A stretch of 64,000 nt of DNA, taken from positions 79,360,001 to 79,424,000 of the forward strand of contig NW_026262712.1 in NCBI RefSeq assembly GCF_021869535.1, given 5' to 3'. Shown piece after piece: positions 1 to 52,568 of this stretch. The stretch's first letter is position 1. Each line of letters starts with the position of its first letter. Made by a program: the position numbers and the translations under genes. The DNA comes from Mytilus californianus (Eukaryota). The notes under the pieces are model-generated. The model was not told the origin of the DNA. It saw nothing but the letters and a program-made list of their open reading frames with translations, and did not search any database.

Positions 1-3000
1 CTATGAAGAATGGTTCTTTCCATATGGCGCTTTTAAAGTACTCGGACGTTCTGCCTCAATAACTGGACTGTTGCAGTAAGGATCCTGAACAACCCTTAAC
101 CTGCTATTATTAGCATACGGCCTATGTACAGGTAACGACGGTTTTATTAAGGATGACTCAACGGTAGATTCACTCCATGTCGTTGCCATCTCTTTTGATA
201 TTGGTTTTGCAGAACAATACTTTCTATATGATGTTGTGTCTTTACTTTTACGTTCAGCTTCAGTAAATGTTTTGTTACAAGAATAATCTTTATTAACATC
301 TGTCCTATTTGTGTTGATTGGGTTCTTCTTGTGAATCCAAGTTGCTCGCAATAGTATTATCGTACACAAGATTAGGTCTTGTAGAAAAGTTTCTCGCAAA
401 AGTATTATCGTACACAAGATTAGGTCTTGTAGAAAAATTCTCTCTCTTTGATGATTTGTCTTTATTTTGACATTTAGCCGCAGTTAATGATTTGTTCCTA
501 AAAGAATCTTCAATAGCATCAATCCTTTTTGTATTAGAATGAGGTCTCTGGTCACGTAACGACGTTTTGCTTCAGGCTGAATCAATAAAATTTTCCCTGC
601 ATGTTGTTACCTCCGCTTCGTATTTAGATTTAATTTTTGAACGCTGTATTCCTTTATCGTGTACTAGAGGATCCCAATTGGTCGTATAGGCACTATCAGT
701 GACAAAACTAGGCCTTGAACATGTTGAAGAAAGTGTCTTTCTATGTGATGATTTCAATATACTTGGACGTTCAGCTGCGGTAAACGGTCTGTTAGAGTTT
801 GAATCTTGAAAACCCGATATCCTACTTTTATAAGCATTAGGTCCTGGGACACGTAACGAAATTTTGCTTTTGGCTGACTCAAGAGAATAATAGCTTTTGG
901 TGCCTCTTCGTTTGACTTTTTGGTTTCATTTGAAATGACAATTTGTTGATCAGGTACTGGTGAATCTAAGTTGCTCTTAAAAGTATTAACAGACAAAATT
1001 AGGTCTTGCGGGAAAATACTTTCTATATAATTATTTGTCTTTACTTTGAAGTTCAGCCTCAGTAATTGTTTGGTTACAAGTAGAATCGTCACTTTTATCT
1101 GTGCTACTTGTCAAACCACGAGCTTTTTGAGCAGGTAATGACGTTTTGTCTAAGTGTACCCCAAAGGATGATGAAATGAATGTCGTTGGCTCTTCTTTTG
1201 GTTTTCTTTTCTTACTATTGCTTGAAAATTTCATTTCTTGATCGGGTTCTTGAGATTTCAAGTTGTTCACAAAAGTATTATCAGAGACAACACAAGGTCT
1301 TGCCGAAATTGACTTTCTATATGGTGATTTACTTTGTCCGTCAGCCTCAATATATGGTTTGTTACAAGAAGAATATTTAATATCCTCTGTTCTTCGTTGC
1401 AATGATAACGATGTTTTGCTTACGGTTGACTCACAAAAGGATTGACTGCATACTGTTGTCTCTTCTTCAGATTTTGATTTTGTTCTGGAAAGCTGAAATT
1501 CTTCATCGGGTTCTTGAGATTTTATGTTGGTCGTAAAATCATTATCAGTGAGAAAACTATGCCCTGAAGAATACTTATTTCCGTGTGGTGATTTCAATAT
1601 ACTCAGACGTTCACCCTCCTCAGCAACTGGTCTATTATAGTAAGAATTTTGGATAACCCCTGTCCTACTGTTATATGCAGGAGGTTCTTGGACACGTAAC
1701 GAAAATTTACTTAAGGTAATCCATTAGAGTAATTACTGTTTGTCGTTTCCTCTTCCCTCGATTTTGTTTTTATACTTGAGCGTTCAATGTCTTGATCAGG
1801 AATTTCAGATTTCAAGTTGCTCGTTAAGGCATTATCAAAAACAAACTTTCTATATGATGATTTGTCTTTACTTTGACGTTTATCCTCAGTTAATGTTTTG
1901 TTACAAGAAGAATCTTTATTAACTTCTGTCCTACTTGTATCAGGATGAGGTCGATGTACAGGTGACGACGTTTTGTTTGAGGTTGACTCAAAAGAAGATT
2001 TACTGTACATCGTTGACCCTCCTTTGAACTTTGTTTTTATAGTTGAAAGCTGAAATCCTGTATCGAGTACTTGATATCCCAAATTGTTTGTAAAAAGTTT
2101 TATCAGTTGCAAAGGTAGGCCTTGTAGAATGGTCCTTTCCATGTGGTGATCTTAATATATTTGCTCGGTCAACATTCGAAACTGTTCTGAAATCATCTTG
2201 ATTAATATCTGTCCTACTTTTATAAGCATGAGGTACCTTTCCAGGTAATGATGTTTGGCTTAATGCTGACTCAAAAGAAGGTTCACTATATGTCTTTGCT
2301 TTTTCTCTAGATATTGATCCAACTCTTGAAAGTTTAATGTTTTGATCTGGTACATGATAGTCCAAGTTATTGTTAGAAAAAGTATTACCAGTGCCAATAT
2401 TTGACCTTGAATAATGGAATTCTCTGTATGGTGATTTGTATATAAAATGACGTTCGGACAGAGTGACTGTGTTGTAACAGTAAGTATCTGGAATATCATC
2501 TGTCTTCAGGGGTTTAGCCTGCGGTTCTTGTACACCTAACAAAGTTTTGTTTACGTTTGGCTCTATAGAATATTTACTACATTGTGTTGCCTCTTATTTA
2601 GATGTTGTTGTACTTGATAAATGAATTTCTTTATCGGATACTGGGGAGTCACTGTTTCTTACATAATTATTATCAAAGCGGAAAGTGGGTTTTAAAAAAT
2701 ATTTAATACTATAAGATGATTTGTTTTTGCTTGAACGGTAAACCTCAGCAACTGTTTTGTTATATAATGAATCTTTAAAGATATTCGTCTCACGTTCATG
2801 GGCATGAAAAGCAGATTCACTTACGGTATTTCCATTCAATTCCAGAAATGTGTTTGGTTTCCATGTTCTCCATGTATGGCCTCCGGGGTCTCTAGATCCT
2901 TGAATCTTTATCGAAATACCGTCATTGGTCGTAGTAAATTTTTTCCGTCTGAAAAGTCGCTGTGGAATTTCATCAACTTCGAATTATCAGCTGTGTAAAA

Positions 3001-3163
3001 CCTCCCATTTTTTATTACAACGGAAATATTTGGAATGTCCTTCGGTGAAATTGATTTAGTTAACAATTCATCTAAAGTGTCCCCTATAAATTTATCATTG
3101 AATTGTGTGTATTTACCCCAAGTGTTTGCAATAGAAAATTTCTGATGGTCTTAACTTCATCAT
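1..3163 (-). pseudogene. Copy A of the DNRR-domain/97-aa-repeat family; disabled; runs off the window edge
   Basis: ATGATG at 3163 begins MMKLRPSEIF. Relative to copy B it has a 14-nt deletion removing SQDS and an ~55-nt deletion removing RRLWVF...; GDTLDELLT, KDIPNISVV, GRFYTADN and KFTTTNDGISIKIQGSRDPG are still readable. About 10-11 repeat units follow, broken into ORF fragments (2594-2839, 2000-2542, 1711-2142, 1031-1597, 1-417). Confidence 0.85.
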
Positions 3164-3630
3164 TCCCGAATACGTCGACTACACAACACATGTTATCTAT
3201 TACACTACTGCTAATTTTAGTTGTACTTTCGATATCGATATTTTTAGAAAAGGGATATTTTGAGTTTTTTCAAAACGTTTCGGAAAACCAACGATTTGCA
3301 TATTCGAAACATCGATTACTAAATACCCCATACAAAATATCAATTCTAATTTGACACAAATAAAATGGATGTTCCAATTTCTCTGCACATGACATGTTTC
3401 TATGGAATAATCATCATCCTATTCTCGTTGGTACATCGAATTTCCAAACCAGACCAGATAGTGCTATTTTATTTATCATTTAACATCCACGATTCCTTAC
3501 CATATAATATGTTTTTAGAGTTTGTCTATCATCATGTGGTGTTGAAATACATAGCCATAGCATAAAACGTAATAATAATATAAAAGTTGAAAAAGTGCCA
3601 AACAAACTTCACACCAAGATTTATAATTGA

Positions 3631-6999: not shown

Positions 7000-7860
7000 T
7001 CACATTTTATGATATATTGTTAAGTCGTGAATATTATCGAAACTAGTCAGTAGTTTCCGAATAAAATCTTGCATATTTTGTTGGTTTGATCTGATATACA
7101 CGCGACTTACTTCCGTTATTTGTAGTTGAAATGCAAATAGTAGCAGTTTGAATCGTTGATTTTCTTCCAACAATAAACTATCCCTGTTGCAGTATGCTAT
7201 TGTTGGCCGATCGCGAGCTTTATTATTTTCTTCGTATTCCTCTTCACATTCTTTTACATTCTGCATACTAGCGGTTCCATGTTACTCGAAACGAAATTAT
7301 CATCACGCTTATACTTCATCTGTGGAGATATGCTATTGCTGTATGATGATTTGTATATACTAGTACTTGGAAGGCGATCATCATAATCTGAGTTTGCATC
7401 TTCCATCACCTCTGTCATTCTTATAATAGGAGATTCTTGGACACGTAAGGAAAAGCTACCTAATTCATTCTCATTATGTCCGCGACATACGTTTGGTTCC
7501 AATGTTAATGTTCTCCAGATTACACCTCCAGGGTCCCTTATCTGTATTGAAGTACCATCATTAGACGTTGTAAATTTAGTGCCAGTTTTAGTTCTTAAAA
7601 TTTACATTAGTTACTTGATGAGCATATATGTTATGTATAAATCTAGCTTCTTCGGCTTTTAGAAATACCCACAATCGTTGATTGTCTGCTGTGTAAAACT
7701 TTCCATTTGTCATAACAATAGTATTATTTGGATATATAATATGCAATTCGTCTTTTGATTTCTTTATTAGTTTTTCACTGCAAGGTGGTTGTACATCAAA
7801 TCTGTTTGAGATAGTGTCTTGTGAGTATGTTTTTAGCTGTAGAATATTTTATATACAACT
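7000..7860 (-). pseudogene. Copy E: compact, degraded paralogue (domain + ~1 repeat + tail)
   Basis: Minus-strand translation gives SQDTISNRFD, PNNTIVMTNGKFYTADNQRLWVFLKAEEA and RTKTGTKFTTSNDGTSIQIRDPGGVIWRT. One repeat-like unit follows (7254-7502), then an 88-aa ORF (7000-7266). The start codon is lost and frameshifts are present. Confidence 0.8.
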
Positions 7861-13299: not shown

Positions 13300-14450
13300 G
13301 CAATCAATTAAAAAAAGTCTAGGCAAATTTATGTTGGACTTACGCATCGACTTTTCAATCATTCACAATACATGTACTTGTAAATATCTAGCAATCTTAT
13401 TAGGATGTTTGTTGTCTCACCTAACAGAACTTATGTCTATTGTTATTTTCTGTCGTGTTCAATTTGTTCAAATTCTTTTTCAGAATTGTTTCCCGCTTGG
13501 TCCATGAGTGTGACTTGGAAGTATACCTCAAACATTAAATTTTTCTTTTTTACTTGAAATATCTAGAACTGCATGAACAGGTTTATATTTTAATTCTTCC
13601 TCACGTTTTGAAATTAGCATACTTTTAACTGAATTTCTTTACCGGCTATTGCGAATTTTGAATTGTTCGAAAAACTTGGCTGCGACGAATGTCATATTTA
13701 AATGATGATTTCTACATATTAGACAAACGGTTGTTTTGTTTTGAAGAGAATCTTTATACTTTTATTTTCGGGATCTTTTTAACAAGTATTCAATAAAGCA
13801 TTTTCCCATGGACAAATTATGTAGTTGTGTCTTATTGTGGAGTCGACAGAAGATTTACATCCTAGCTATAGCGTTGGTTGTTCATCAGCTGTTGATCATT
13901 TTATACTTGAACAGTGAATTTCTTTGTCTAATACTTCAGCTGGACATTCTCTGCTACTCTATTTTTTTATTACTGTATAATTAATAACTGTAATAATTGG
14001 TATGTACTTCAATTGTGAGCATCGATAACTGTTTGTGGTTCAAAAGGAATCCTGATTAACATTCATAATACTCTGATTAACAAGAGGTCCTTGGACAGGT
14101 AACGATGTTTTGCTTAAGATTGACTCGAGAGAAAAATCTTAATCTTTGTGTTGGCTCTTTTTTCAGCTGTTGAAATTTTTAACTTAAACGATGAATTTCT
14201 TCCTTGGAAACTGAGGTTTCACAATGCCAAAACACATTATCCAAACCAACAGCAGACTTTTTAGAAAGGTAATAACTATATGATAAATTATATGTACTTG
14301 AATTCTGAGTTTCGGTAACTGTTTCGTTACAGAAAGAGTCTTGACTAACATCCGTCCTACTTTATGATAAGCATGAGGTCTGTGGTCATGTAACGAAGTT
14401 TTTCTTACGGTTGACCTGAGAGAAGATTTAATATTAAGTGTTGACTCCTT
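13300..14450 (-). pseudogene. Decayed continuation of copy B: further repeat units plus the shared 3' tail
   Basis: After the TAA at 14451 the frame continues KESTLNIKSSLRSTVRKTSL (repeat consensus) and then frameshifts. 13320-13620 is homologous to 25650-25860 and 40200-40420. Confidence 0.7.
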
Positions 14451-17396
14451 TTAAGTTGTTGATCTCTTCATATTTGAACGATGATTTTTTTTGTCGGATA
14501 CGTAATATCTACAGTTACCCAAAACATCATTATCACACCAAAAATGAGGCTTTCCAGTAATGTTATCTTTATATGATGATTTGTATGTATTTGGATGTTG
14601 AGCCCCGGTAACTGTTTCGTAACAGAAGGAATCTTGACTTACATTCATGCTACTTTGATTAACAACAGTTTCTTTGACTCGTAGCGAAGTTTTTCTTACG
14701 GTTGACCTGAGAGAAGATTTACTTTTAAGTTTTGGATCTTTTTGAACTGTTGATCCTTTTATACTTACACGTTGAATTATGTTGTCGGATGATGGATATT
14801 TACAGTTACCCAAAAAATCATTAGCATATCGAACATGAGGTTTTCCAGTAATGTTATCCGTATATGATGATTTGTTTGTACTTGGATGTTGAGCCTCGGT
14901 AATTGTTTCGTAACAGAAGGAATCTTGACTCTCATCCATGCTAGTTTGATAAACAATAGGTCCTTGAACACGCAAAGAAGTTGTTCTAATGGTTGACGTG
15001 AAAGGAGATTTACTACGTTTTGGCTCTTTTTCACCTGTTGATTTTTTTATACTCGAGAGATGAAATGTTCTGTCGGATACTGGATATTCACAGTTGCCAA
15101 AAAAATCATTATCAGAACTTACATCAGGCTTTCCTGAAATGTATTTACTATATGATGATGTATATGTATTTGAATGTTTAGACTTGGTAATTGTGTTGTT
15201 GCCGAAGGACTCTTGATTTATAGGTGCTCTTCTTTGATTAACCAGAGGTTCTTGTACAGGTGGCGAAGTTTTTTTTATGGTTGACTCGAGAGAAGATTTA
15301 CTATTAAGTGTTGGCTCTTTTTCAGCTGTTGATCTTTTTATACTTGAACGGTAAATTACTTTGTCTGATTCTGGGTATTCACAGTTGCGTACCAAATCAT
15401 TATCCCATCGAACATCAGGCTTTGCAGAAATGTAATCATTATATGATGGTTTGTATGCACTTGGATGTTGAGCATCGGTAACTGTTTTGTTGCCGATGGA
15501 ATGTTGATCAACTTTCGTCCTACTCGGATGTCCTTCGACACTTAACGAAGTTTTGTCCAAAATTGAATCGAGAGAAGATTTACTTCTTCGTGTTGGTTCT
15601 TCTAGAGCTGGTGATGGTTTTATAATCGAACTGTGAATTTCTTTGTCTGATACTGGAGAGTCATAGTTGCTCGAAAACTCCTTACAACTCCTAACATCAG
15701 GCTTTGCAAAAATTAATTCATTATATGATTGGAATGTACTTGGATGTTGAACCTCGTGTTTTTTAAAGACGGAACATTGATTATCACTCGACCTACTTTG
15801 ATTTTCATGAGGTGCATGGACATGTAAAGAAGTTTTCCTTAAGCTTGACTCAAGATATGATTTACTGCATTGTGTTGCTTCTTTTTCAGCTTGTGATCTT
15901 TTTATAATTGAGAGCTGAATTTCTTTGTCAAATACTGGAGGTTCAAGATTCCTTGAATGAGCAGCATTAGACCGATAACTAGGCCTGGAATAATAGTTAT
16001 AACAGTATGATGATTTGTATGTACTTGGATGTTGAGACTCGGCAACTGTTTTGGAACGGAGGGGATCTTGATTTACATTCGTCCTACTTTGATTAACAAG
16101 AGGTCCGTGGACACTTAACGCAGATTTTCTTGCGGATAATTCGAAAAAAGATTTAGTTCTTCGTGTAGGCTCTTCCTCAGCTGTTGGTTTTTGTATACTT
16201 GAACGATAAGGTTTTTTTGTTGATACTCTAGATTCGCTGTTGCTTGAGAAATCATAATCATAAAGACAATCAGTCTTGGCAGAAATTTTATCAATATACG
16301 AGTATTTATATGTACTTGCATGTTGAGCCTCAGTAACTTTTTTGTTGCCGAATGAATCTAGATTAACATTCGTCCAACTTTGATGGCCTTGGGCGCGTAA
16401 CGTAGTTTCACTTGAGATTGACTCGAGAGAAGATTTACTACGTGTTTGTTTTTCTTCAGTCGGTGATGGTTTTATAATGGGACTGTGAATTTTGTTGTCC
16501 GATGCTGGAGAGTCCCACTTGCCCGAAAACTCATTATAACTCCGAACATCAGGCTTTACAGAAATGTAATCACTATATGATTTAAATGTTCTTAGATGTT
16601 TAGCCTCGCTTGCATATTTGTTAGAGAACGAATCTGGATTAACACTTGACCTACTTTGATTTACGGGAGGTCCTCGGACATGTAATAAATTGTTCCCTAC
16701 GGTTGATTCTAGAGTCGATTGACTGCATTTTCTTGTTTCTTTTTCTGCTTTTGGTCTTATTATGGTGGAAAGCTGAATTTCTTTGTCAGCTACTGGAGAT
16801 TCGACGTTGCTGGAATGAGAATCATCAGACCGATAACTAGGCCTGGAGTAATAGTTTTTACAATGTGATGATTTGTATGTACTTGGATCTTGATACTCGG
16901 AAACTATTTTTGTACAGAAAAAACCTTGATTTACATTAGTCCTATTTTCAATAGCATAAATCTTACGGGAACGATAGGCAGAACTGCTCACTGTGTTTTC
17001 ATGTACTTTCCGAAATGTGTTTGGTTTCCACGTTCTCCATATTTGCCCTCCGGGGTCTCCAGATCCTCGAATCCTAATCGAAATTCCACCATTAGTCGTT
17101 GTAAATTTTGTTAGATTGACATGTCGCTGTGTAACTTGATCAAATTCAATGTCATCTAAAAATCCCAATTCTTCTGCTTTTCGAAAAACCCACAGTCTCC
17201 GATTGTCAACAGTGTAAAACTTTCCATTTATTAGTACAGAGGTAATATTTGGAATGTCCTTCAGTGAAATAGATTCAGTCAACAATTCATCTAACGTGTC
17301 TCCTATAAATTTAGCATTGAAAGCTGTGTGTTTACCCCAATTGTTTGCAATAGAATCCTGTGAAAAGAATATTTCGGTTGGTCTTAACTTCATCAT
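14451..17396 (-). CDS. Copy B: uncharacterised protein, ~120-aa ParB/sulfiredoxin-like DNRR domain + 9 Ser/Lys/Thr-rich ~97-aa repeats (981 aa from MMKL; 990 aa from the upstream ATG at 17423)
   Basis: Uninterrupted ~2.95-kb ORF in AT-rich DNA. Domain spans 17028-17396, with DNRR at 17196-17207. Repeats begin QHPSTYKSSY-like. The MMKL start is shared with the paralogues. Confidence 0.8.
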   Translation of the reverse strand: MMKLRPTEIFFSQDSIANNWGKHTAFNAKFIGDTLDELLTESISLKDIPNITSVLINGKFYTVDNRRLWVFRKAEELGFLDDIEFDQVTQRHVNLTKFTTTNGGISIRIRGSGDPGGQIWRTWKPNTFRKVHENTVSSSAYRSRKIYAIENRTNVNQGFFCTKIVSEYQDPSTYKSSHCKNYYSRPSYRSDDSHSSNVESPVADKEIQLSTIIRPKAEKETRKCSQSTLESTVGNNLLHVRGPPVNQSRSSVNPDSFSNKYASEAKHLRTFKSYSDYISVKPDVRSYNEFSGKWDSPASDNKIHSPIIKPSPTEEKQTRSKSSLESISSETTLRAQGHQSWTNVNLDSFGNKKVTEAQHASTYKYSYIDKISAKTDCLYDYDFSSNSESRVSTKKPYRSSIQKPTAEEEPTRRTKSFFELSARKSALSVHGPLVNQSRTNVNQDPLRSKTVAESQHPSTYKSSYCYNYYSRPSYRSNAAHSRNLEPPVFDKEIQLSIIKRSQAEKEATQCSKSYLESSLRKTSLHVHAPHENQSRSSDNQCSVFKKHEVQHPSTFQSYNELIFAKPDVRSCKEFSSNYDSPVSDKEIHSSIIKPSPALEEPTRRSKSSLDSILDKTSLSVEGHPSRTKVDQHSIGNKTVTDAQHPSAYKPSYNDYISAKPDVRWDNDLVRNCEYPESDKVIYRSSIKRSTAEKEPTLNSKSSLESTIKKTSPPVQEPLVNQRRAPINQESFGNNTITKSKHSNTYTSSYSKYISGKPDVSSDNDFFGNCEYPVSDRTFHLSSIKKSTGEKEPKRSKSPFTSTIRTTSLRVQGPIVYQTSMDESQDSFCYETITEAQHPSTNKSSYTDNITGKPHVRYANDFLGNCKYPSSDNIIQRVSIKGSTVQKDPKLKSKSSLRSTVRKTSLRVKETVVNQSSMNVSQDSFCYETVTGAQHPNTYKSSYKDNITGKPHFWCDNDVLGNCRYYVSDKKNHRSNMKRSTT

Positions 17397-17419
17397 TCCG
17401 GAAACGTCGACTACACAAC

Positions 17420-17740
17420 TCATGCTTTCTACTCCCTTTTACAACTGCTCATTATAATTTTACATTCAATATCGATATTTTTGAACGGATATTGTAAGTT
17501 ATTTCAAAACGTTTCGCATAATTGATTTGAATATTCGGAAAATCGATTATTAAATACCCTATACAAAATATCAATTTCATATTGACGGCTTTTTGTATAT
17601 ATTTTGGTTTTATATACTAGGTCATCAAATATCTTCTTTCAAAACGTATTCATGTGATGAATTGTTTCATTGGTATTTGTTATTTGTTCGTAAACAAAAT
17701 GGTGGTTCTAATTTCTCTAAAACATTTGTGTCACGTCATT
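17420..17740 (-). promoter_or_regulatory. Conserved upstream block (putative promoter/5'UTR) shared by copies A, B and C
   Basis: aaacgttt...gaatatt...atcgatt...aaatacc(c)ca/tatacaaaatatcaatt is shared with 3190-3345 and partly with 32480-32570; 17650-17730 matches 32640-32720. TATCGATA lies 70-74 bp upstream of the ATG in A (3233) and B (17470). Function is not demonstrated. Confidence 0.45.
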
Positions 17741-18419
17741 CTATTGTTGCACCCGTTTTTAATTCAGTTAATAGGCTATCATTTACCTGTAAGACACTAG
17801 TATGTTAGCTTTAACTGTCTAAAAGTAACCCTACTCTTTCTTACAAATGTTGGACAGCTGAAGGTAGCATAGTTGACTTTTACAAGATAGTTCAAGAACT
17901 GAAAAAAATCATTCAATTCGCACAATCCTTTTTGTTTCATATGAAATAAAAAATACAACGACAGAAGCAAATGACAATTACACAAACACATATTATTAAA
18001 GTCATCCTCCAATATATTAACTTTGTGATTCATCAAAACATTTCTTGGGTAAAGATTCAAATTGATTTTAACACTGCCAAAACATATTTCACAGCTATTT
18101 TTGTCATGTTTTTGGTTGTCTCTATAATCTCCAAATTAATGAGTTCGGTTGATAATGATCGTTCATTCTAATTAAAATATAGAACTCTGATTTCCTTCAA
18201 GAGTATAACAAAATCAAGAGTTCTTTATTTTAGTTAGACTGATGCTCGTTGTAAGATTGTTTTTTTTTTTTTTTTGTTGCTGCTTTTAGGTATCTCATTT
18301 TGCAAAAGATTTATACTCGTCCGTCTTCTGATATAAAAACCGACCTTTGGTGTTGATCTCACTCGCCCTAAGATTATTTTTAGCTACAATTACAAATCAT
18401 GGTATCTTTGTTGTTATGA

Positions 18420-18900
18420 AAAAAATAAAATCACAAAAATACCTAACTCCGAGGAAAATTCCAAATGGAAAGTCCTTTATCAAAGGCCAAAATCAAAATC
18501 TCAAACACTGCAAATGAATGGATAACAAAAGAGGGGTAAAAATACTAAAGGGACAGTCAAACTCACACTCACAGATCGAAAATAAACTGTCAACGCCATG
18601 GCTAAAAAAGAAAAAAACAAACAGATAAATAATATTACACAAGACGCAACATAGAAAACTAAAGAAAAAGCAACACGAACCCCATCAAAATCTAGGGGAG
18701 ATCTTAGGTGCTCCGGAATGGTAAGCAGATCCTGCTAACATATGGCACCCGTCGTGTTGCTCATTTTATTACAAAGCCGGAAAATAGTCTTATTCGGTAG
18801 GTCACATTCGTGAAAAGGAAAGGGGATTGTCATATTCCTGACTTGGTTCAGATATTTCGTTTTGTAGATAACGGTGGATTGAACCTGGTTTTATAGCTAG
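18420..18900 (+). repeat. Composite dispersed repeats; homologues at 39755-40000 (+), 27020-27130 (-), 32975-33085 (-)
   Basis: gggacagtcaaactca...gatcgaaaataa...ctg..aacgccatggctaaaaaagaaaa...gctccggaa.g.taagcagatcctgct...ggcacccgtcgtgttgctca is shared by 18545-18770 and 39775-39990. The aaaatcacaaaaatac...gaggaaaatt unit recurs inverted at the other two sites. Confidence 0.75.
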
Positions 18901-25649: not shown

Positions 25650-28600
25650 AAAATTAAAAAAAAAACTGTTTTCTGGTTTGCATTACACGTCGACTTTACA
25701 ATTATTAGCATGTCATTAAATATCTTAACAAATCTTCATAGGATTTGTATGTTCTTGCATTACTGTTGGCTACATGTACTTGTATTTTTTTCTTGTTGAA
25801 TTTGGTCAAATATTGAGAAAATTGTTTTATCTTGGTTCAAACAAGTGTGGCTTGAGTTTTTCAGGAGGTCTTTGGAAACGAAACGGAATTTTTCTTACGG
25901 TTGACTCAAAAGTATATTAACTGAATAGTGTTGACTCTTTTGATCTTCATCTGGTATTTGCGATTCTATATGTACGTTGCCATAAAAAGGATAGAAATTA
26001 TTGTAAGGTTTTTATTATTGTGAATACTGCGACTGAGTGACGATCACAATAATAGTCAGAGCTCGCTTTCTGATATCTAATATATATATACAGCTGTATG
26101 AGGGTATTTTGAAATCGCAATGCTTAAACTCGCATTTCGGTCCATCCTTCAATAATAAATGCACGCAATGTTTGTTTTTTTTTTCTTTCTGAATTTACAG
26201 TATCAAAAACAAAACTAGTCCTTGTACAAAAGTAATTTCTATTTGGTGATTTGTATATACTTGGACGTTCCGTCTCAGTAATGGTTTAATTACAGGTAGA
26301 ATTTTGAATATTCTCTGTCTTGCTTTTATTAGATTGAGGTCCATGAACACATACAGCAGTTTTGCTTGACGTTGACTCAAGAGAAAGTTGACTGTTTATA
26401 AGTGCTCTTACGTCAGACTTGATTTTTCTTGAAAGCTGAATTTTCAAGGTACCTTTAACAGGTACTTGAGATTTCAAGTTCCTCTAAAAACTACTTTACT
26501 TTGTCTAGAAGAATATTTGTTTCTATATGGCGAATTGTCATTACATGGTAGTTAAGTCGCAGTAATTTTTTTGTTATTAGACCAATCTTGAATAACATGA
26601 ATAACCTCCGTCCTACTTTTATAAACATAAGGTTTTTTGACAAAAAACATGGTTTAGCTAAGTGATGACACGCAAAAAGACTGATTGCATAATATTAACT
26701 ACAGAATTTCGGGCACTCAAGATTCAGATTTATTCGAATAAGGATTTTCACAGAAAAGATCAAACTTTGTAAACATTTAGTCACAAGTAGTATATGATGG
26801 TTTGTACATATGTACATGTATGTACTTAGAGGAATTTTGATAAATAATCGTCTTACTTTGATCAACAAAGTTCCTTGGACACGTAACGAAGTTTTTTCTT
26901 AAGGTTGAGTCGGAAGAAGATTTATATCTTAGTATTGTCTCGTATTCGGCAGCTGATCGTTTTATACTTGAACGGTGAATTTGTTTGTCGGATACTGGAG
27001 ATTTGCAGTTGCTTGTACTAAGTCAGGAATATGACAGTTGTTTTTAATTCGGCTTATGTGTTTAAGCTTTTGATATTGCCATTTGATAATGGATTTTCCA
27101 ATTTGAATTTTCCTTGGAGTTCAGTAATTTTGTTATATTACTTTTTTGCCCGAAAAAGTACATTGGATACAAATGTATCAGGCATTGCAGAAATGTAAAC
27201 ACTATGCATAAGTTGTCCAATGGTTTTACCCTGATGTTGAGCCTCGGTACATGTAACGTATTTGTTTCTATAGAATTCTTGATTAATATTCATCCTACTT
27301 TGATTAGCAAGATTTCCTTGGACAAGTAACGATGTTCTTCTTAAGGATCATTCTAGAAAAGATTTTTCTTCGTGTTGACTTTTCTTTAGCGATTGATTTT
27401 TTTTTATACTTGAACGCTGAATTTCTTTATACTAGAGATTTAAAGATATATAAAACGAATCGACAGGAATCTGTTAAGTCAGCATAGGAAGAATAAGCAA
27501 AACAAACTGATACCTTTACCTATCGAATCGAACCATCCACAAAACTCAAAATACCAGTAAAATCAATAGATCAGTGCAACAAACCACATAAGTCTTCTGT
27601 TCCAAAGTAAGATCTCCACCCCTACCCACAACGATGTCATAAAACTAATCATATATACATCATTGTTTTACCTAACTCCAAAAAAATAAGCACCAATATT
27701 AGTCAGGACCATTGACAGGCACCCAGGACTAAATTTAAAGAAAATACCATTAAATATGGTGGTGAACAAATCAATTCCAAATATCTGAGAGACATTGGCA
27801 GACCCTAATTTTATTATATGCTTGCAAGAGTAATGGTTATTTGAATACAAAACAAATTCTTTTTAAACATTTTCCATTACATATTTTTTACACTTTATCA
27901 CAATAACACATCCGTACCAAATTGTGAAGCACACCGAGGTCAGGCAAGTATGGCCAACATATGGCCAAACTTATAGATGGGAATTCACAAAATATTACTA
28001 TACAAGTAAAAATAGAAAACCATACAGTATTTTACATAAACACCCACACGCCAACGTGGCCAAAATTCACAAAACAGTTGTAGAGAAATAGATATAGACA
28101 TAGTGTCACACAGAAATATTGATAACACTGATATTCTCTGTGGTGACTTAAACATGTTAAACGGACATATAACCGAATAGTAAAACCCTATGATATACTC
28201 CCAATAACCTTCCAAACTCAAAATAAATAGATTAATAAAGACAATCATTTGGTAAACGACACTTTCTCTCACCACAACGAGCTATAATTATCTCGAATAG
28301 ATTACATACTGACACAATGAATATTTAACAAAATTAAAAGCTTTTCTTAAAAAAAACACTAATCAGATTTAACGTTTATTGAACTGGTTGGAAATTAAAT
28401 GGATTGTCCTAAAATAAGCAAACATTTGTGCTATACCAGAACAATTACGCTGAACAGTGCCAAGCTCAATGTTTCGGCGGAATCCGAAAAAATCTACTAA
28501 GCATTAGGCAACAAACACATACGATTTGGGACATAGTTTGACAAAAAAGGTTCAGATAACTCTTCCAAACAACTTAAGGTTAATATATTTTGGAACGAAA

Positions 28601-31600
28601 GAGAAACCATAAAGAGGAAAATTTCGACAATCAACTCGAACAGAAACCTCCATAAAAAGACTTGTTTTAACATATAAAATGAAAATTTGCCTGTAACACA
28701 CATTTAGTAACTCTGGTTTATATCACGAAGATTGAGACGTCACATGTTCAGACAAATAAAGAGGAGTTCTTGCAGATCATTAAAAAAAACCTAGCCAACC
28801 CCAAAAACCAAAATTAGTGTAATGAGGATAATATTCACATGTGCCAGCTTTGTTGCGATATATCTAACGACCTGTCGGGAAATTACTACGAAATTTTTTT
28901 TTTAAATCTATTCAAAATCTGAATTTGGGAAAAGCAGGAGACGAATATGGGATATAAGCCGAACATTTGAAATTATCACTTATCGTTCAAATGTATTTAG
29001 AAAGAAAAACCAGCGAACAATTCAAGTCTGGTATAAAAACACCAGTCTTTAAAAATAGCAAAGACGACAGCATATTGGAATGAATGTTTGAATTCAAACA
29101 TTTTCTTATAATATCTATAGAAACTACATTTCACCTCACTTACTTTTCAGCCTTGAGGTTTTACCTCTTACAACTGGCCTAATCAATGCTTTGTGTAAAT
29201 TCCACTTATCCGTTTTAATAGTTATCAAAGGTACGAGGCTAATAATTTAATATGCCAGAACGCGCGTTTCGTCTACATAAGACTCATCGGTGACGCTCAG
29301 ATCAAAATAGTTAGAGAGACAAACAAGTACAAAATTAAAGAGCATTGAGGACCCAATGCTATTTAAGTTATTTCAACAAGAACAGCGTCAATAGCAGTAT
29401 ACTCCCTAATTAGCGACATCCCTATACATGTAGTAGCAGAGTTTCATGATAAACAATAACGCCTTCTACACTCAATTCGTGCTTTAAAAAATCAAACTAT
29501 AAGTGCGCCAGTACCAAATACAAATAAGCAATGGAACGTTGCTCCACAGAACTGAAATATCCTTCGTCAATATAGTCTAGTCTCCCAACAAAAGTAAAAT
29601 GGAAACAGATTGTTAGATCTGCTATAAGTTTTAGATCAATACATTTAGGTCACTTAGTACAGAGAAATCAACCCTAAATCAGCTATGTATTGGCAATATC
29701 AGTGATTGAGAAATATATCCAGTTTGGAAAACTGCAACAGAAAATCAAGGGGAAATAATGAAATCTACTAGTATAACAAAACTAGGATACTTACCAGAAC
29801 ATACTTCTTACAAGCAAATAAAGCAATACATATATTTAACATAGGCAGTACAGATCCACTTCGCCCGTTATGCAAACTCGAGGAAGAAAAACTCCAACAT
29901 TTTCGAAATAGATGCCCAACTCTGGAAGGGGTTTGAATGACCTTTCCCTATTAATACAGGCTTTATTTAATTAAATTGGAATTGAACAATTGAAAACAAA
30001 TTTTCAGAATAGTTACTCCTTGGGCCAATTTATTGTTAAATTCAGAAAACTACTTGGCTCTATACTGCCAAAAAAGATAGTTTCCTGAATACTCTTCAAT
30101 CGGTTTCTAGGAGCTGTTATAAATTATATCATCAGGGGTTAACTCAGCTAAACGCTCGAACATTACAAATATTATCATTCATTGCATATGGATTTGAATG
30201 TTAATCAATACTTTTCAGAGTACAAACAAGTTGTGCATATAAAATACAGTTAGATGTGTACACGAAAGAAATAGTTGTATTTTGGTATAGTGAAGTTGAA
30301 TTATTATACAGGCAGTTGATATATAGACAGCACTAAGCTGATGTACGTAATTGAAAGAGTCCTCCATATATGGTGCGTCATACCACGGTTGACTATCGCC
30401 ATAAAGTTTATTAGTAATGTTTTCAGATTTCAGACCTTTAGAAACTTTTAGAAGCGTACAACTTAGTAATATAGTGTATTTCTTTTGATATCTTCCATGT
30501 AATACAAGCCCATTATATTATTAGAAAGTGCGTCTTAAACTGTAATAATTCAATAGTTAGTTTAGCTATTTTTGTCCCTGTAATATAAGCCCACTGAAAA
30601 AATCCAGAAATTGCCGTGCTCCTAACCACAAAAGGAAGTTACAAAAAGAAGCAGAAGAAGATTCACAGATGTCCAAACAATCATTGTCACATCGAACATC
30701 AGTCTTAGCAGAAATTTCATCACTATATGATGATTTGTTTGTACTTGTATATTGAAACACGGTACCTGTGTTGTTACAGACGGAATAATAATTAACTTTC
30801 GACGTTTTTTGTTTAATAACAGGTCCTTGGACATAACAAAGTGTTTTTATTGCTGGCCTCGAAAGAAGATTTACTTCTTAGTGATGACTCCTCTTCATCT
30901 ATTGATCTTTTTAGGCTTGAATGTAGAATTTTATTTCTATGTTGGGTATTATAGATTCACTGTTGCTCCAAATAGCATTATCACACAACAAGTCAGGCTT
31001 GTCAGAATTATTTTTACTGTATACTAGTTTGTATGTACTTGGATGTTGAGCCTCGGTGACTGGTTTGTTACAGAAGGAAGATCGATTAACACTCGTTCTA
31101 TCTTGTTTAATAATGGGACCTTGTACACGTAACAAAGTGTTTATTTTTGCTCGACTCGAAAGAAGATTTACTTCTTATTGATGGCTCCTCTTCAAATGAT
31201 GATCTTTTTATACTTTTTCGTCGGTGTAATATCAGCCCAATGAAAAAATCAAGCAATTTATGTGCTCTTAGCCACAAGAGGAAGTTACAGAAAGAAGAAG
31301 AAGATGCTCTACAGATGCCCAAAATCATTTTCACATAGAACATCAGGCATAGCAGAAATACAACCACTATATGAAGATTTGTATGTACTTGTAAGTTGAG
31401 CCTTGGTAAAAGTGTTGTTACAGCAGGAATTTTGATTAAAATTCGGTCTATTTTGATTAATAAAAGGTCCTTGGACCAGTAAAGAAGTTTATATATTTCT
31501 TGACTCAAAAGAAGATGTACTTCCTCTTGTTGGATCTTCTTTAGCTGTTGATCTTTTTATACTTGAATGCGACATTACTTGGTCGGATACTGGAGAATCC

Positions 31601-32373
31601 CTACTGCTCGATGATGTGTGTATATTTGGACTGTAGAAATCTTGAGTAACATTTGTCTTATTTTGATATACAGTAGGTCCTTGGACACGTAACAAAGATT
31701 CTATATATTTTGAATCGAAAGAAGATTTCGTATGTTTTGATGACTTTTCATCAACTTTTGTTGTTTTTATACTTGGAAGCTGAATTTTTTCTCAATACTG
31801 GAGTTTCGCTGTTGACCGAAAAAGAATTATCACACCAGACATCAGGCGTTGCAGAATTGTAATTGTTATATGATGATTTAAATGTACTTGGATAGTGAGC
31901 CCCGTTACAGAAAGAATTTTTAATAACATTCGTCCTACTTTCATTAGCATGAATTACATGTGAACGTAATGCAAATTTTTCTGTATTTTCTTTTTTATCC
32001 TGATTTGTTTGGTTTCCATGTTTCCATGTTTTCCATGTTATACCTCCGGGGTCTCCAGATCCTCGAATCTTCATCAAAATTCCGCCATTATTCGTTGTAA
32101 ATTTTATCGTGTAACATGATTAACTTCGATTGTATGTACAAATCCCAATTCTTCGGCTTTTTGAAATATCAAAAGTCGCCGATTGTCAGCTGTGTAAAAC
32201 TTTTTATTTTTAATTACAACCGTAATATTTGGAATGTCCTTCAGTAAAATATGTTCAGTTAGCAATTCATCTAACGTTTCCCCCATCAATTTTGATCTGC
32301 AGGATGATTGTTCGCATCATTTGTTTGAAATAGAGTCCTGTGAAAAGAATATTTCCGATGGTCTTAACTTCAT
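25650..32373 (-). pseudogene. Copy C: disabled paralogue, repeat region interrupted by insertions
   Basis: ATG at 32373 gives MKLRPSEIFFSQDSISNK*(TGA at the W position)...GETLDELLTEHILLKDIPNITVVIKNKKFYTADNRRLLIFQKAEELGF...TR*, then RGSGDPGG and an 8-nt duplication (catggaaa) frameshift. Repeat remnants lie at 30570-31950 and 25860-27450, and the tail at 25650-25860. Confidence 0.8.
27460..30500 (+). mobile_element. Heavily degraded L1/Tx1-like LINE remnant inserted in copy C
   Basis: Plus-strand motif relics in the expected order: SRIDYIL (~28291), GWKLN (~28385), IWDIV (~28523) and LCKLEEEKLQHF..RCP (~29870). No long ORF. Confidence 0.5.
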
Positions 32374-33750
32374 TATTCCCGAATACGACGACTTCATAAA
32401 ACATCCTTCTTACATCCTTTCACAAAAATCCTTTCATTTTCCTATCACAACAGCTAAATTTAGTTGCACATTCAAGGGATATTTTGAGTTATAATAAAAC
32501 GTTTCTGAAAACTTAAAGATTTGAATTTTCGAATAATCAAATATCGAATATCCCATACAAATTACCAATGTTATCATAAAAACTTGTCATATAATTGAGA
32601 TTAAAACTATATCCTGAAAATATTCTACTTTCAATATGACTTCACGTGAAGAATTGCTTCCCTTACATTTGTGATTTGTTTGTAAACGAAGAGGTACTTT
32701 TAGTTTCCCTGCGAATGACATGTTTCTATTGAATTAGATTCTCGTTGATACCTTGAATTTCAAAATCAGATAGTATTATTTTATCTATCATATCAAATAA
32801 CATCTCGATTTCATAGCATAGTATATTATATATAAATTAAATATAATAGAATATAATAGAATATAATATAAATAAGTCCATTAAATATCAACCCAACGAT
32901 ACAAAAAGAAGATGATAAAAAACAAATAGAGGTCAATTTGTGGCATTCAATAATAGAAAGGTCAATATATATTACTATTGTTAGCCATTCGTTTGATGTG
33001 TTTGAGCTTTTGATTTTGCCATTTAATTAGGGACTTCCTTTTGTATTTTCCTCGGCGTTCAGTATTTTTGTGATTTTACTTTTTACTAGTATTCCAACAG
33101 ATACTCTCCTTCATCTGCTCTGGGTACTGTTATACACCCAATAAACGTAACGTTTCAATGTATAATAGATACGTTGATGATACGAAGTGATTTTGTAAGT
33201 CTTTCAAGAAGGGGTCATGAAATAGTACAAAGATAATTTGTGTTTTTTTTATTTATCCTTGTAGTAAGACTTGTTTGTGAACATTATTCATCGTTTTCCA
33301 GTAATTCACCTATTGATAACTTACTCAATGAAATTATTATTGCAATGTTTTCAGAAAATTGGTCTAAATATAACTTACTTAAGGTAATATTTGAATCGTA
33401 ACATAGATTGATACTCGACACTAAATATTTACGACCTGGTTATCTTCTTAAACAAATATATTAGAAATAACAAAAATACAAATCGAAGTTCAGATATCTT
33501 AAAATTTAGTACAGGAACTTGAATATATTCTAAATATGTCTTCCGTGTATCATCATTACCTATGGAATAAGATACCTTTAAATATAAGACAATGCGGTTT
33601 ACCTTATCTTTGATTAAACAACACATATGTTTGTAAACAAAATCAGGACCAATTTTCCATGCATTATAACGTTTGATCTCCCTCAATTTCAATTTCTATT
33701 TTAAATGAATTACTAGATACAGTAAACCGTCGTTATTTGAATAGAGTTGA

Positions 33751-40199: not shown

Positions 40200-41290
40200 G
40201 CCATCATGTCAGTTTATTCTCCATTCTCAAAACTATTGAAAAAACTTCTCTCCTAATAGTACGGCCGGAATTTGATATTTTCTTTCTTGTGAATTTGCCA
40301 CGGAAGAATTGTTTCGCCTAGTTCATACAAGTGGTGTTTCGGAGAAGACAACAAACGTTCATGAATTTATTTCTCTTTATTTTTTGTTGGGTGAACAGTT
40401 TTGTCGAGCTGTCTTTTTCATTAGAGAATTTTTAATACCCTGCATACTAGTATATTGTTTTCATTTTAGAAGGCCTTTTGACAGTCAAAGACATTTTAAG
40501 GTTGAATCGGAAGTAGATTTACTCTATATTGCTGCTATGTTCTTTTTGAAAAATTGAAGTACTTTCTCGAGTAATTGAGATTCCAAAGTGCGCGATAAAG
40601 CAATATCACAGACTATACCATTAATAAAAGTAATTTCCATTTGGCAGTTTGTCTTTACTCGAATGTTGGTTTCATTCTTCCAGTCTGATGAACTTTTTTG
40701 TCACAGGAAAAGTTTTGATAACCTCTGTCCCACTGTTATGCGCATGACGTCTTAGGACACGTAACGAAATTTATATTAAGGTTGATACGAAAGTATATTG
40801 ACTACATAATAATGTTTCTTCTTTAGCTTTTGATTTTATTATAGTTGAAAACTGACTTTCTTTGTCCTATACTAGAGATTTACAGTTGCTCGAAAAAGCA
40901 ATATCACTTGAACGCCGACAACTAGCCTTCCGTGCATTATAATTAATAAATGATGATTCAAATGTACTTGAATGTTCAGCTAGGCTAACTGCTGTGTTAC
41001 AGAAAGAATCTTGAATAATATATGTCCTCCTATTATTTTTAAGAGGTGGAAGAACATGTAACAAGCTAGGTTTCACATAAAGTAAACGTTTCTTACGCTT
41101 TGAAATTTCTTTTCTTAAAAACTGAATTTCTTTTTGGAATACCAGTGATTTATGGTGTTGCCGAATAGAAATTACTATATGATGATTTGTACATGCTTCG
41201 ATGTTGAGCCTCGTGATCAGTAACGGTTTTGTTTTAGAAGGAATCTTGATTATCGTTCGTTCTACTGTGGTTAATTAACAAAAGGTTCTT
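40200..41290 (-). pseudogene. Copy F: repeat units and 3' tail without a detectable N-terminal domain
   Basis: Repeat signatures (ggacacgtaacgaa, tactagagatttacagttgctcgaaaa, atgatgatttgtaca). The tail cacttgtatgaactaggcgaaacaattctt (minus strand) matches the tails of B and C. Confidence 0.65.
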
Positions 41291-49469: not shown

Positions 49470-52400
49470 CATATAATAAATGTTCAATTCAATCCATTCA
49501 TACTTTGACAAGAAATACTTCATAATATAGATTTTCTCTCGTTTTTTGCTGCTCTGAAAATTTTCAAACCTCCATACTCAAGGGCACATAACTGGATCTT
49601 GGTCAGGTATCGCAGATTTTCTTTTTAAAGTTGACTGGAAAGACGATTTACGTCTAAGCTTTCTCTCTTCTACAGCGTTTAATCTTTTTATTCTTGAAAA
49701 CTGAAATTCTTTGTCGGATACTAGAGATGTACGGTTGTTCAAAAAATAATTATCTCCCCGAAAACGAGGACTTGAAAAAGCATTCTCACCGACACAACTA
49801 GACCTTGAATAATTGTCATTACCATATGCTGCCTTATATGTTTTTTTATGGTGAACCACTGTATCTGTTTTATTACCGAAAGAATATTGAATAGCATTCG
49901 TTCTTCTTTCTTTCACAGGAGGGTCATACAGACGTAACGAAGTTTTTCTAAAGGTTGGCTCGAAAGAAGATTTACTTCTCAGTATTGCCTCTTTTTCAGC
50001 TTTTGAAGTTGTATATTGAATTTCTTTGTCGTAAAGTGAAGATTCTGTGTTGCTCGAAAAATGATTATCTCCCCGAAAACTAGGAATCGAAAAAGCATTC
50101 TCACAGACATAACTAGGCCTTGAATAATTGGCATTACCATATGATGATTTGTATGTACTTTGATGTTGATCTGCGGTAAATGTGTTATTGCAGAAAGCAT
50201 CTTGAATAGCATTCGTTCTTCTATGTTTTACAGGAGGTTCAAAGATGCGTAACGAAGTTTTTCTAAGAGTTGATTCGAAAGAAGATTTACTTCTTAGTGT
50301 AGCCTCTTTTTAAGCGTTTGGTCTTATAAAAGTTGTATATTGAAATTCTTTGTCAGAAAGTTAGATTCTTTGTTGCTCGAAAAATAGTTATTTCCCCGAA
50401 AACTATGACTTGAAAAGGCATTCTTACAGACATAACTAGGCCTTGAATAAGTGGCATTACCATATGATGATTTGTATGTACTTTGATGTTGATCTGCGGT
50501 AAATGTGTTATTGCAGAAAGCATCTTGAATAGCATTATTCCTTCTTTGATTAACAAGAGGTTCATAGCCACGAAACGAAGTTTTTCTAAAGGTTGCCTCG
50601 AAAGAAGATTTACTTCTCAGTATTGCCTCTTTTTCAGCTTTTGAATTTGTATATTGAATTTCTTTGTCGTAAAGTGAAGATTCTGTGTTGCTCGAAAAAT
50701 GATTATCTCCCCGAAAACTAGGAATTGAAAAGGCATTCTCACAGACATAACTAGACCTTGAATAATTGGCATTACCATATGATGATTTGTATGTACTTTG
50801 GTGTTGATCCACGGTAAATGTGTTATTGTAGAAAGCATCTTGAATAGCATTCGTTCTTCTATGTTTCACAGGAGGTTCAAAGATGCGTAACGAAGTTTTT
50901 CTAAGAGTTGGTTCGAAAGAAGATTTACTTCTTAGTGTTGCCTCTTTTTAAGCGTTAGGTCTTATTAAAGTTGTATATTGAAATTCTTTGTCAAAAAGTG
51001 TAGATTCTTTGTTGCTCGAAAAATAGTTATCTCCCCGAAAATAATGACTTAAAAAGGCATTCTTACAGACATAACTAGGCCTTGAATAAGTGGCATTACC
51101 ATATGATGATTTGTATGTACTTTGATGTTGATCTGCGGTAAATGTGTTATTGCAGAAAGCATCTTGAATAGCATTATTCCTTCTTTGATTAACAAGAGGT
51201 TCATAGCCACGAAACGAGTGTTTTCTTGAGGTTGGCTCGAAAGAAGATTTATTTCTTAGTGTTGGCTCTTTTTCAGTTTTGGATCTTACAAAAGTTGGAA
51301 ATTCAATTTCTTTATTTGATACTGTAGATTCACAGCTGCTGTGATTTCTATATGATGCTTTGTATGTATTTGGGTGTTGAGCCTCAATTACTGTTTTATT
51401 GCCGAAAGAATTTTGAATAGCATTCGTCCTTATTTTATTCACAGGATGGCCATAAACATGTAACAAACCTTTCCTTAAGGTTGGCTCATAAGAAGATTTA
51501 CTTCTTAGTGATGCCTCTTTTTTAGCTGCTGATCTTATACAAGTTGTAAACAGAATGTCTTTGTCGGTAACAGCAAATTCACGGCTGCTCGAAAAATAAT
51601 TATATTCTCGAAAACTAGGACTTAAAAAAGCATTATCACAGACATAACTAGGTCTTGTATATTTGGCTTTATCATATGATGATTTGTATGAACTTTGATG
51701 TTGATTCTCAGTAAATGTTTTGATACCAAAGGATTCTTCAATAGCATTCCTCCTACTTTGATTCACAAATTGAAGTTTTCTGTCGGAAACTGTAGATTCA
51801 CAGTTGCTCGAAAATGCATTATCACATCGACTAGTTTGTGTCCTGCTTTGATTTACAGAAGGTTCATGAACTCGTAAAGAACGATATCTAGAGGTTGACT
51901 CGAAAGATGAATTATAACATATTGTTGCCTCTTTTTCAGTGTTTGATCTGGTAATACTAGACAACTGAATTTCTGTTTCGGATAATGGAGATTCACGGTT
52001 GTTCGAAAAATAATTATCTTCCCTCAAAAAAGGCCTTGAAACATTATTTTCACAGACAGAACGAGGCTTTGAACAATTGTAATTTCTATATGATGATTTG
52101 TTTATACTTGGGATTAAGCCGCGATAACTGTTTTGTTACAGATAGAATCTTCAATAACATTCCTCGCCTGACATGTAATGGATGTGTTTGGTTTCCATGT
52201 TCTCCAATGTCTACCTCCTAGGTCTCTTCGAATCTTTATCGAAATTCCATCATTATTCGTTGTAAATTTGGTCCCTCGTTTAGTTCTGAAATTTTGTTGT
52301 GTACCTTGAAACACTTCTATTTTTCATGTAAATATCCAAATTCTTCGGCTTTTCGAAAGACCCACAGTCTTCGATTATCAGTTGTGTATAACTTTCCATT

Positions 52401-52568
52401 TATAATTACAGCGGTAATAATTGCAATATCATCAAGTGAAACTGATCAGGTTAACAATTCATCCAATGTTTCCCTTATCAATGTATCACTGTAAGGTGTG
52501 CGTAGATCCCACCTGTTTGAAATAGAGTCCTGTGAATAGAAAATTTCCGATGGTTTTAATCTCATCAT
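49470..52568 (-). pseudogene. Copy D: disabled paralogue with ~8 longer (~107-aa) repeats
   Basis: ATGATG at 52568 gives MMRLKPSEIFYSQDSISNRWD...RETLDELLT*(52446)...NGKLYTTDNRRLWVFRKAEEFGY, then an A-run frameshift, then RTKRGTKFTTNNDGISIKIRRDLGGRHWRTW. Repeat ORFs lie at 50948-52027, 50324-50869 and 49578-49916. Confidence 0.85.

Follow-up and report, generated by a model that had tools for sequence, protein, structure and literature searches.

What kind of gene family occupies, as a row of same-strand copies, a 64,000-nucleotide stretch of the genome of the mussel Mytilus californianus (GCA_021869535.1, JAKFGE010000006.1, positions 79,360,001-79,424,000; hereafter the window), and what might a surviving member of it do? 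A preliminary description of this DNA had recognized a tandem array of genes coding for an N-terminal domain with a DNRR motif, here called the head, fused to a long repeat region, here called the tail, and had taken the domain to be undescribed. We consider it probable that the locus is an old cluster of single-exon genes in the same orientation, that these genes join a Tox-ParBL1 head to a fast-changing disordered repeat tail, that one copy, designated B, is alone functional in the window, and that the head acts on a nucleoside triphosphate (NTP). Tox-ParBL1 occurs widely, both among the toxins of bacterial warfare and in many eukaryotes. It is a divergent branch of the ParB/sulfiredoxin (Srx) fold that also serves as the C-terminal 'warhead' of RHS, CdiA, MafB, and HINT toxins. 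Each mussel unit consists of an N-terminal Tox-ParBL1 domain of ~125 residues followed by a basic, Ser/Lys-rich tail made of repeats of ~95-105 residues.

Five copies with a head (A, C, B, D, and E) were found on the minus strand by tblastn with residues 1-135 of B, at the places where the preliminary description had put them (3163, 7860, 17396, 32373, and 52568). The repeats of the B tail match the window on the minus strand only, at 4-2887, 13800-17018, 26247-27428, 30659-31993, 40720-41281, and 49587-52111. Seven pieces are present in all, the five head-bearing copies and two relics consisting of repeats only (Table 1). One of these relics had been reported as the sixth piece of the array at 40200-41290; it is real, but its homology spans 40720-41281. 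The other, at 26247-27443, was missing from that count of six, and represents the distal part of D or else an independent remnant.

Only B is open, with 990 codons, as had been claimed. In A, C, D, and E, the head contains in-frame stops and frame changes, and the chains of high-scoring segment pairs that align these copies with their nearest relatives switch frame at least three times and run through additional stops; the broken copies were handled as separate pieces or with an X at every break. Every dead head is altered at an invariant or nearly invariant position of the family: the DNRR motif in A and C, the tryptophan after RRL in D, and the glycine of IGETLD in E. The chain of A runs through frames -2/-1/-2/-1 with stops, and its nearest intact relative is a paralog 144 kb away (P0252). 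Copy D shows at least three frame changes and at least five stops along its chain, and its head is 85% identical to that of an intact protein of Mytilus coruscus (P0004), while the head of E holds one stop and one frame change. The independent decay of the copies in the earlier account is borne out, but its transposable-element (TE) insertions inside the copies were not shown; remnants of long interspersed nuclear element (LINE) reverse transcriptase lie between copies, at ~35.0-35.8 kb and 43.6-44.5 kb. The sole place where an insertion within a copy is possible is the 3.2-kb gap downstream of D (27443-30659), and a search for terminal repeats around this gap (27.4-30.7 kb) found none. The spacers at 33954-38175 and 42473-47700 are occupied by broken minus-strand LINE-type elements, with RVT_1 matches at 43584-44525 (E-value 8e-23), 35008-35292, and 35499-35798.

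The coding part of B is one 990-codon open reading frame (ORF), which bears out the earlier statement that no intron interrupts it, and the protein has no signal peptide. Its real start is probably Met10 or Met11 (MKLRP), because most family members begin directly with the domain. The tail comprises residues 154-990 and its units are 30-60% identical to each other, with a three-unit super-period in which the best pairs are units 1/4, 2/5, and 3/6. It is rich in serine (17%), lysine (9%), and threonine (7%), has an isoelectric point (pI) of 9.35, and is predicted to be disordered, the stored ESM model having a predicted local distance difference test (pLDDT) score of 0.38. No relatives of the tail were found beyond the Mytilus family members, and its matches in the ESM Atlas (scores of at most 0.62) are low-complexity look-alikes, which were set aside as uninformative. 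The repeat period is 315 nt in copy E compared with 291 nt in B. Upstream, blastn aligns 16631-17718 with 31638-32710 (70%) and 16987-17576 with 2820-3345 (72.5%).

Table 1. Positions of the family members and their parts in the window; head matches are those of tblastn with residues 1-135 of B.
Feature	Position	Strand	Remarks
Copy B, intact single-exon coding sequence (CDS), 990 aa (P0001)	14451..17423	-	79,374,451-79,377,423 of JAKFGE010000006.1
B head, 125 aa	17019..17393	-	PTEIFFSQDSI, IGDTLD, IPNI, DNRRLW, KFTT.NGG.S..IRG..DPGG
B tail	14454..16964	-	~8.75 tandem units of 92-97 aa, 291-nt period
Probable 3' untranslated region (UTR) of B	13411..14450	-	degenerate repeat units past the stop at 13800-14450; RNA-labelled contigs end at 13411-13450
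Upstream stretch common to A, B, and D	17424..17718	-	blastn; probable 5' UTR or promoter of the duplicated unit
Copy A, pseudogene	4..3196	-	head 2852-3196, repeats 4-2887; may extend past the window start
Copy C, pseudogene	7003..7845	-	head and short tail, internal deletion, frame changes, DNRR to DNQR
Copy D, pseudogene	30569..32397	-	head 32021-32382, repeats 30569-31993
Copy E, pseudogene	49587..52574	-	head 52186-52574, repeats 49587-52111 (315-nt period)
Copy F, repeats-only relic	40720..41281	-	up to 47% identity to the tail of P0006
Repeats-only relic	26247..27443	-	33-44% identity to tails
Head match, B	17423-17019	-	100%
Head match, D	32382-32021	-	E-value 8e-41
Head match, E	52574-52186	-	E-value 6e-33
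Head match, A	3196-2852	-	E-values 5e-23 and 4e-17
Head match, C	7827-7491	-	E-value 5e-19

Neither Pfam (E-value of at most 1) nor NCBIfam provides a family for the head, for the whole B protein, or for a bacterial stand-alone homolog, and sequence and profile searches of the PDB with the head returned chance-level matches only. An exhaustive HMMER search with the head yielded 821 clusters at 50% identity with E-values of at most 1e-3, and 282 at 1e-10 or below. Alignment of 61 members defines the family motifs PSEI.(F/Y)SQDSI, IGETLD, IP.I.V, DNRRLW, and KFTT.N.G.S..VRG.PGG, in which R66, L67, and W68 are invariant and conservation is 90% or higher at S6, Q12, D63, N64, and R65. Copy B retains every invariant residue of the family; it carries threonine at the first position (PTEI) and keeps SQDS. 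A confident AlphaFold2 (AF2) model of the head required the 61-sequence alignment, with which the pLDDT is 92.8, compared with 31 from the single sequence. In this model the DNRR motif forms the start of a helix (residues 64-75) that comes after a hairpin (50-61).

Structural comparison places this model in the ParB/Srx superfamily, to which all of the best 49 PDB matches belong (ParB, Noc, KorB, Srx, SbnI, the serine kinase SerK, and Atu1540). These matches are weak, with E-values of ~1e-2 and template modelling (TM) scores of 0.40-0.55, and the Swiss-Prot models give the same picture with no nearer relative. In a shape search of the ESM Atlas, the TM scores are 0.72-0.74 to PT-HINT and RHS toxin tips, 0.68 to PT-VENN (CdiA-type) tips, and 0.58 to classical ParB_N. 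In the AlphaFold database (AFDB), the head model matches residues 300-401 of a 402-residue RHS protein at 31% identity. Other AFDB matches come from molluscs, tunicates, amphioxus, cnidarians, dinoflagellates, a fungus, a choanoflagellate, and a kinetoplastid, the taxa being read from accessions, and the relatives there include fusions to C2H2 and MYND zinc fingers. Among 150 family members scanned with Pfam, no partner domain recurs, and no sensor or adaptor domain of the TIR, Death, or NACHT kind was recognized. Seven bivalve relatives (P0003, P0008, P0015, P0024, P0026, P0031, and P0038) have two or three ParBL1 heads per predicted protein, which reflects either real multi-head proteins or the fusion of neighbouring tandem genes in the models.

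The relationship with bacterial toxins is also found by sequence. The mussel head matches bacterial plasmids by tblastn with E-values of 8e-5 and 2e-4, and a scan of bacterial genomes returned one locus, a stand-alone 101-residue homolog in a Thermomicrobiales metagenome-assembled genome (L003), where no toxin context is present. This homolog matches plasmid p246 of Bacillus toyonensis at the C-terminal tip of an orphan RHS cassette (L007:3533-4339), in which YD/RHS core motifs are followed by FTQDS...DNRRL. The ParBL1 cassette lies downstream of an RHS gene, is followed by an 84-residue ORF, and adjoins an AHH toxin cassette. Comparison of the mussel-family profile with this cassette by hhalign gives a probability of 97.6% and an E-value of 4e-12, with FSQDS, IP.I, DNRRL, and KFTT..G.S..VRG in register. 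The surrounding plasmid region (L007:2304-5838) is a string of orphan RHS C-terminal cassettes, of which the ParBL1 and the AHH cassette each have a small ORF behind them, with an HBL/NHE enterotoxin gene close by. It is a textbook polymorphic-toxin cassette array, and its ParBL1 cassette is missing from the PLSDB gene table.

By a computational definition (Zhang et al. 2012, PMC3482391), Tox-ParBL1 comprises domains with a predicted ParB fold, a conserved [ST], and a [NT][RT][RT] motif, in most cases N-R-R. According to the same work, the conserved N-terminal Ser/Thr is absent in classical ParB, the type member is NGK_2271 (MafB) of Neisseria gonorrhoeae, and the domain is found both in toxins of the MafB, RHS, FilH, and HINT types and in eukaryotes, metazoa among them. 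The mussel head has the ParB/Srx fold, the N-terminal Ser/Thr, the N-R-R motif, and homology to toxin tips. Its membership in Tox-ParBL1 is well supported because the motifs fit, the RHS cassette is matched by hhalign, and the TM score to toxin tips is ~0.7. The domain is therefore not an undescribed one, as had been thought, since it fits a family that was published in 2012 together with its metazoan members.

Is copy B a living gene? It looks functional, as the only such copy in the window, with selection keeping its frame open. Under neutrality, 5-10 stops would be expected in the B frame since its split from the M. coruscus ortholog, and the probability of none is 8e-3 to 6e-5, indels uncounted. 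Among intact paralogs, the ratio of nonsynonymous to synonymous divergence (dN/dS) of the head is 0.34-0.54 (Fisher p 2e-4 to 0.04). B is probably also transcribed at a low level, which bears on a check that the preliminary description had proposed. Contigs from three same-species runs guessed to be RNA span 13411-17155 at a depth of 2-6 and are absent from 17274-18243, a pattern that fits, without proving, a weakly expressed, 3'-biased minus-strand transcript of B. About one fifth of the 31-mers of B recur in RNA-labelled data of a second organism (a dozen runs, ~7 studies), as expected of an ortholog that is ~5% diverged.

Beside B, the same three runs pile up at 18244-19000 with a summed word depth of ~50-3,300, compared with 2-6 on B, and with many loose ends. 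A 46-nt tandem duplication is present at 18944-19036, and the segment resembles a short interspersed element that is highly repeated and possibly transcribed.

The copies of the family are old. They are 62-75% identical at the DNA level, their homology is confined to the CDS and ~300 nt upstream, and comparison within the window found no shared ends or inverted repeats among them. Synonymous divergence (dS) of the head is 0.20-0.43 among paralogs, compared with 0.024 for the head and 0.035-0.071 for the tail between B and its M. coruscus ortholog. The order E, D, B, C and the common orientation are kept by the counterparts on the M. coruscus contig CACVKT020005342.1, where a repeat relic is also found ~2.9 kb downstream of the D ortholog, as in M. 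californianus. In the head tree, each window copy pairs with a different protein or gene model from other Mytilus species or a public dataset: D with M. coruscus P0004 (support 96/99), C with an M. edulis protein (P0010), and E with M. coruscus model P0021, a grouping based on the first 82 residues.

The fates of these copies in the two species differ from one gene to the next. Copy C shows the same DNQR change and internal deletion in M. coruscus (L004:19970-20371), and therefore died before the species split. Both species carry a broken E, with lesions at different places; in M. coruscus, the model P0021 (L010:10001-12130) is stitched over a stop and frame shifts. Copy D, badly broken in M. 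californianus, has a clean 447-codon ORF as its M. coruscus counterpart (P0004). The M. coruscus ortholog of B consists of 357 and 909 open codons on the two sides of a single 1-nt shift in an A-run, which could be an assembly error; the gene model (P0249, L004:10001-13802) bridges this shift by a 73-nt 'intron'. The ortholog is longer than B by 301 residues, or ~3 repeat units. Since the 'introns' of P0249 and P0021 bridge lesions in intronless genes, protein databases overstate the intact members of the cluster.

Below the window, the cluster continues on the same strand with two intact members, P0006 (887 aa) 66 kb away and P0252 (755 aa) 144 kb away, each flanked by another broken head, so that its length is at least 200 kb. 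Named matches to the family come from more than a dozen bivalve genera, and the family is greatly expanded across bivalves. Judged by its sequences, the family follows birth-and-death evolution, as had been proposed, with one open and several independently decayed members on one strand in the window. The pace appears to be slow and not rapid as the preliminary description had it, because the copies are old (62-75% identity, with paralog dS far above ortholog dS) and their order is kept in M. coruscus. In this slow turnover, genes would be duplicated in tandem, exchange repeat units unequally, and decay into pseudogenes.

How such a protein might work can be outlined from its fold. The proteins would act inside the mussel's own cells, because they have no signal peptide and begin with the head. 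To our knowledge, every characterized member of the ParB/Srx superfamily binds an NTP at the arginine motif after the beta-hairpin. ParB, Noc, and KorB bind cytidine triphosphate (CTP), and Srx, SerK, and SbnI bind adenosine triphosphate (ATP). In the head, the N-R-R motif appears to occupy the position of GERR in ParB and GCHR in Srx, where the helix that follows the beta-hairpin begins, and the S/T-Q-D-S, G-E-T-L-D, and D-N-R-R motifs may together bind the nucleotide. The head might then hydrolyze the nucleotide, move its phosphate to a target, or cleave a target; the enzyme suggested earlier is a plausible one. Phosphotransfer or nuclease chemistry has been argued for Tox-ParBL1 (Zhang et al., PMC3482391). 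The repeat tail may serve as a length-variable tether, an interaction platform, or a multimerizer. An immune or genome-conflict role of the family is a plausible hypothesis.

Several observations weigh against this explanation. The link of the head to the type member NGK_2271 is indirect, through MafB clusters among its Atlas neighbours. No activity assay of any Tox-ParBL1 domain, bacterial or eukaryotic, was found in the literature searched, and the chemistry of the head is for that reason drawn from the superfamily. A non-exhaustive scan of 20 intergenic and flanking ORFs of the window found no immunity-type partner of the SUKH or Imm44 kind. Between B and its ortholog, the head dN/dS is 0.86 (6 nonsynonymous and 2 synonymous changes) and the pooled value is 0.72 (p = 0.09), which is compatible with neutrality. 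The dN/dS comparison that had been proposed earlier thus falls below 1 for heads among paralogs and is indistinguishable from 1 in the ortholog pair, so that amino-acid constraint on B is weak or is masked by low counts. Support for expression is thin, as the three runs are merely guessed to be RNA and reach a depth of 2-6, and no read on B was seen in one raw RNA-seq run, of which ~6% was sampled.

In a more specific version of this explanation, which we regard as a doubtful but live possibility, the locus encodes immune or conflict effectors: domesticated toxin warheads would act against viruses, transposons, or transmissible cells, the variable tails would provide recognition or activation, and the gene content would vary between haplotypes. 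A domain descended from the toxins of bacterial inter-strain warfare and multiplied in one lineage, the bivalves, would suit this role, and comparable expansions are found in other bivalve immune families (PMC8195603). The shift of repeat number by 301 residues between orthologs, the survival of D in M. coruscus and its loss in M. californianus, and a B frame kept open while amino-acid constraint is weak also agree with it. The suggestion, which the preliminary description had already made, still draws solely on toxin ancestry and family expansion, however, and the array is old and syntenic instead of rapidly turning over. The head dN/dS lies below 1 and not above it, and neither a signal peptide nor, among the 150 members scanned, a sensor or adaptor domain was found. 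The fullest form of the idea is a tentative and rather unlikely one: that bivalves turned a Tox-ParBL1 warhead into hundreds of intracellular, clustered genes for immune or anti-selfish effectors that consume NTP or target nucleic acids, with tails that set recognition and live members that vary between individuals.

A housekeeping or germline function, as a nucleic-acid or granule protein in which the head is a nucleotide-gated switch and the basic tail binds RNA or DNA or drives condensates, is unlikely. The nearest solved structures are indeed CTP-switch proteins, the tail is basic (pI 9.35), of low complexity, and predicted to be disordered, the protein lacks a signal peptide, and zinc fingers of the C2H2 and MYND types are fused to some AFDB relatives. 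However, most cluster members are pseudogenes, the repeats change quickly, and expression is very weak; the shape of the head is much nearer to toxin tips than to clamp ParBs, and no helix-turn-helix (HTH) or dimerization domain is present.

That the copies are transposon or Helitron cargo, a possibility that the preliminary description had singled out for a check, or a dying functionless family in which B is open by luck, is very improbable: the brokenness of all window copies but one, the LINE and long terminal repeat (LTR) remnants in the spacers, the ortholog-pair dN/dS not significantly below 1, and the very large size of the family would agree with it, but homology limited to the CDS and ~300 nt upstream, with no shared ends, terminal repeats, or inverted repeats, makes TE cargo unlikely in copies that are old (62-75% identical) and syntenic in a second species, while the B head keeps its invariant residues, paralog dN/dS is 0.34-0.54, and chance retention of a 990-codon frame in DNA of 35% guanine-cytosine (GC) content has a probability of at most 0.01, indels uncounted.

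The presence of the array is in itself not very surprising, and most of what the window contains is pseudogene. The architecture of an N-terminal head with a long Ser/Lys-rich repeat region, a tandem cluster that is large and in part decayed, and the extent to which the family has expanded in bivalves appear to be new; the literature searched contains no later paper that uses the Tox-ParBL1 name for this domain, no experiment on its members, and no mention of a bivalve expansion. The intact B, its nearly identical ortholog from a sister species, and the naturally dead copies, whose motifs are altered, together form a comparison set for the function of the N-R-R head. It also adds one more bacterial-conflict domain to the families that have multiplied in sessile marine animals.

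Elsewhere in the window, a 22-nt tandem repeat of ~18 copies with 78% matches (19828-20228) lies inside plus-strand ORFs at 19727-20294 that have no Pfam match, and a 31-nt tandem repeat is present at 57722-57870. From 58000 to 64000, the GC content rises to 0.40-0.44 and long minus-strand ORFs occur at 59212-60408, 60981-61613, 62126-63085, and 62463-63968; they match no Pfam family significantly, the best match being a sub-threshold DUF4729.

Among known systems, the ParB/Noc/KorB clamps share with the mussel head a core of a beta-hairpin, then a helix, then a strand, with an arginine motif at the helix start, and they provide its top PDB matches. These matches are weak (E-value ~1e-2, TM 0.40-0.47), and the mussel protein lacks the HTH, the dimerization domain, and the ParA-binding motif of the clamps. 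It differs from classical ParB in having no PF02195 match, DNRR instead of GxxR, and a disordered repeat tail after the head in place of the HTH. Sulfiredoxin is likewise a small single-domain protein of the ParB/Srx fold in eukaryotes and an ATP user (PDB entries 1xw4, 3cyi, and 7lj1 were matched), but the TM score is only 0.40-0.55, and the catalytic cysteine motif GCHR of Srx is replaced by DNRR in the mussel head. ParBL1 is regarded as an acquisition from bacteria separate from Srx (Zhang et al., PMC3482391).

The bacterial Tox-ParBL1 toxins resemble the head in their predicted ParB-like fold, N-terminal Ser/Thr, and N-R-R motif, in the match of 97.6% between the family profile and the RHS cassette, and in a TM score of ~0.7. 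Unlike in these toxins, the mussel domain is N-terminal in a eukaryotic protein, which lacks a signal peptide and is therefore predicted to be intracellular. The mussel genes lack a trafficking or RHS/FHA region, and no immunity gene was seen beside them among the 20 intergenic and flanking ORFs scanned. Fusion to long Ser/Lys-rich repeats, arrangement in tandem clusters, and expansion in bivalves also set the mussel head apart, and are not in PMC3482391. CdiA-ToxB, a classical ParB-fold toxin that binds and hydrolyzes ATP and is toxic in bacterial and plant cells (bioRxiv 10.64898/2026.05.05.722872), is likewise a ParB-fold warhead without an HTH and offers a working model for the mussel head. 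ToxB is found with PF02195 and retains altered ParB Boxes I-III, whereas the mussel head has no Pfam match, carries DNRR for GxxR, and stands in the separate ParBL1 branch.

A parallel at the level of gene families is provided by the TRADD-N expansions in Crassostrea, described in a paper on bivalve immune-domain expansions in which ParBL1 is unmentioned (PMC8195603). The mussel members differ from these in having only disordered tails and no adaptor, sensor, or receptor domains. In both cases, a domain that originated in bacterial conflict has been multiplied in sessile bivalves, with architectures that vary between related species.

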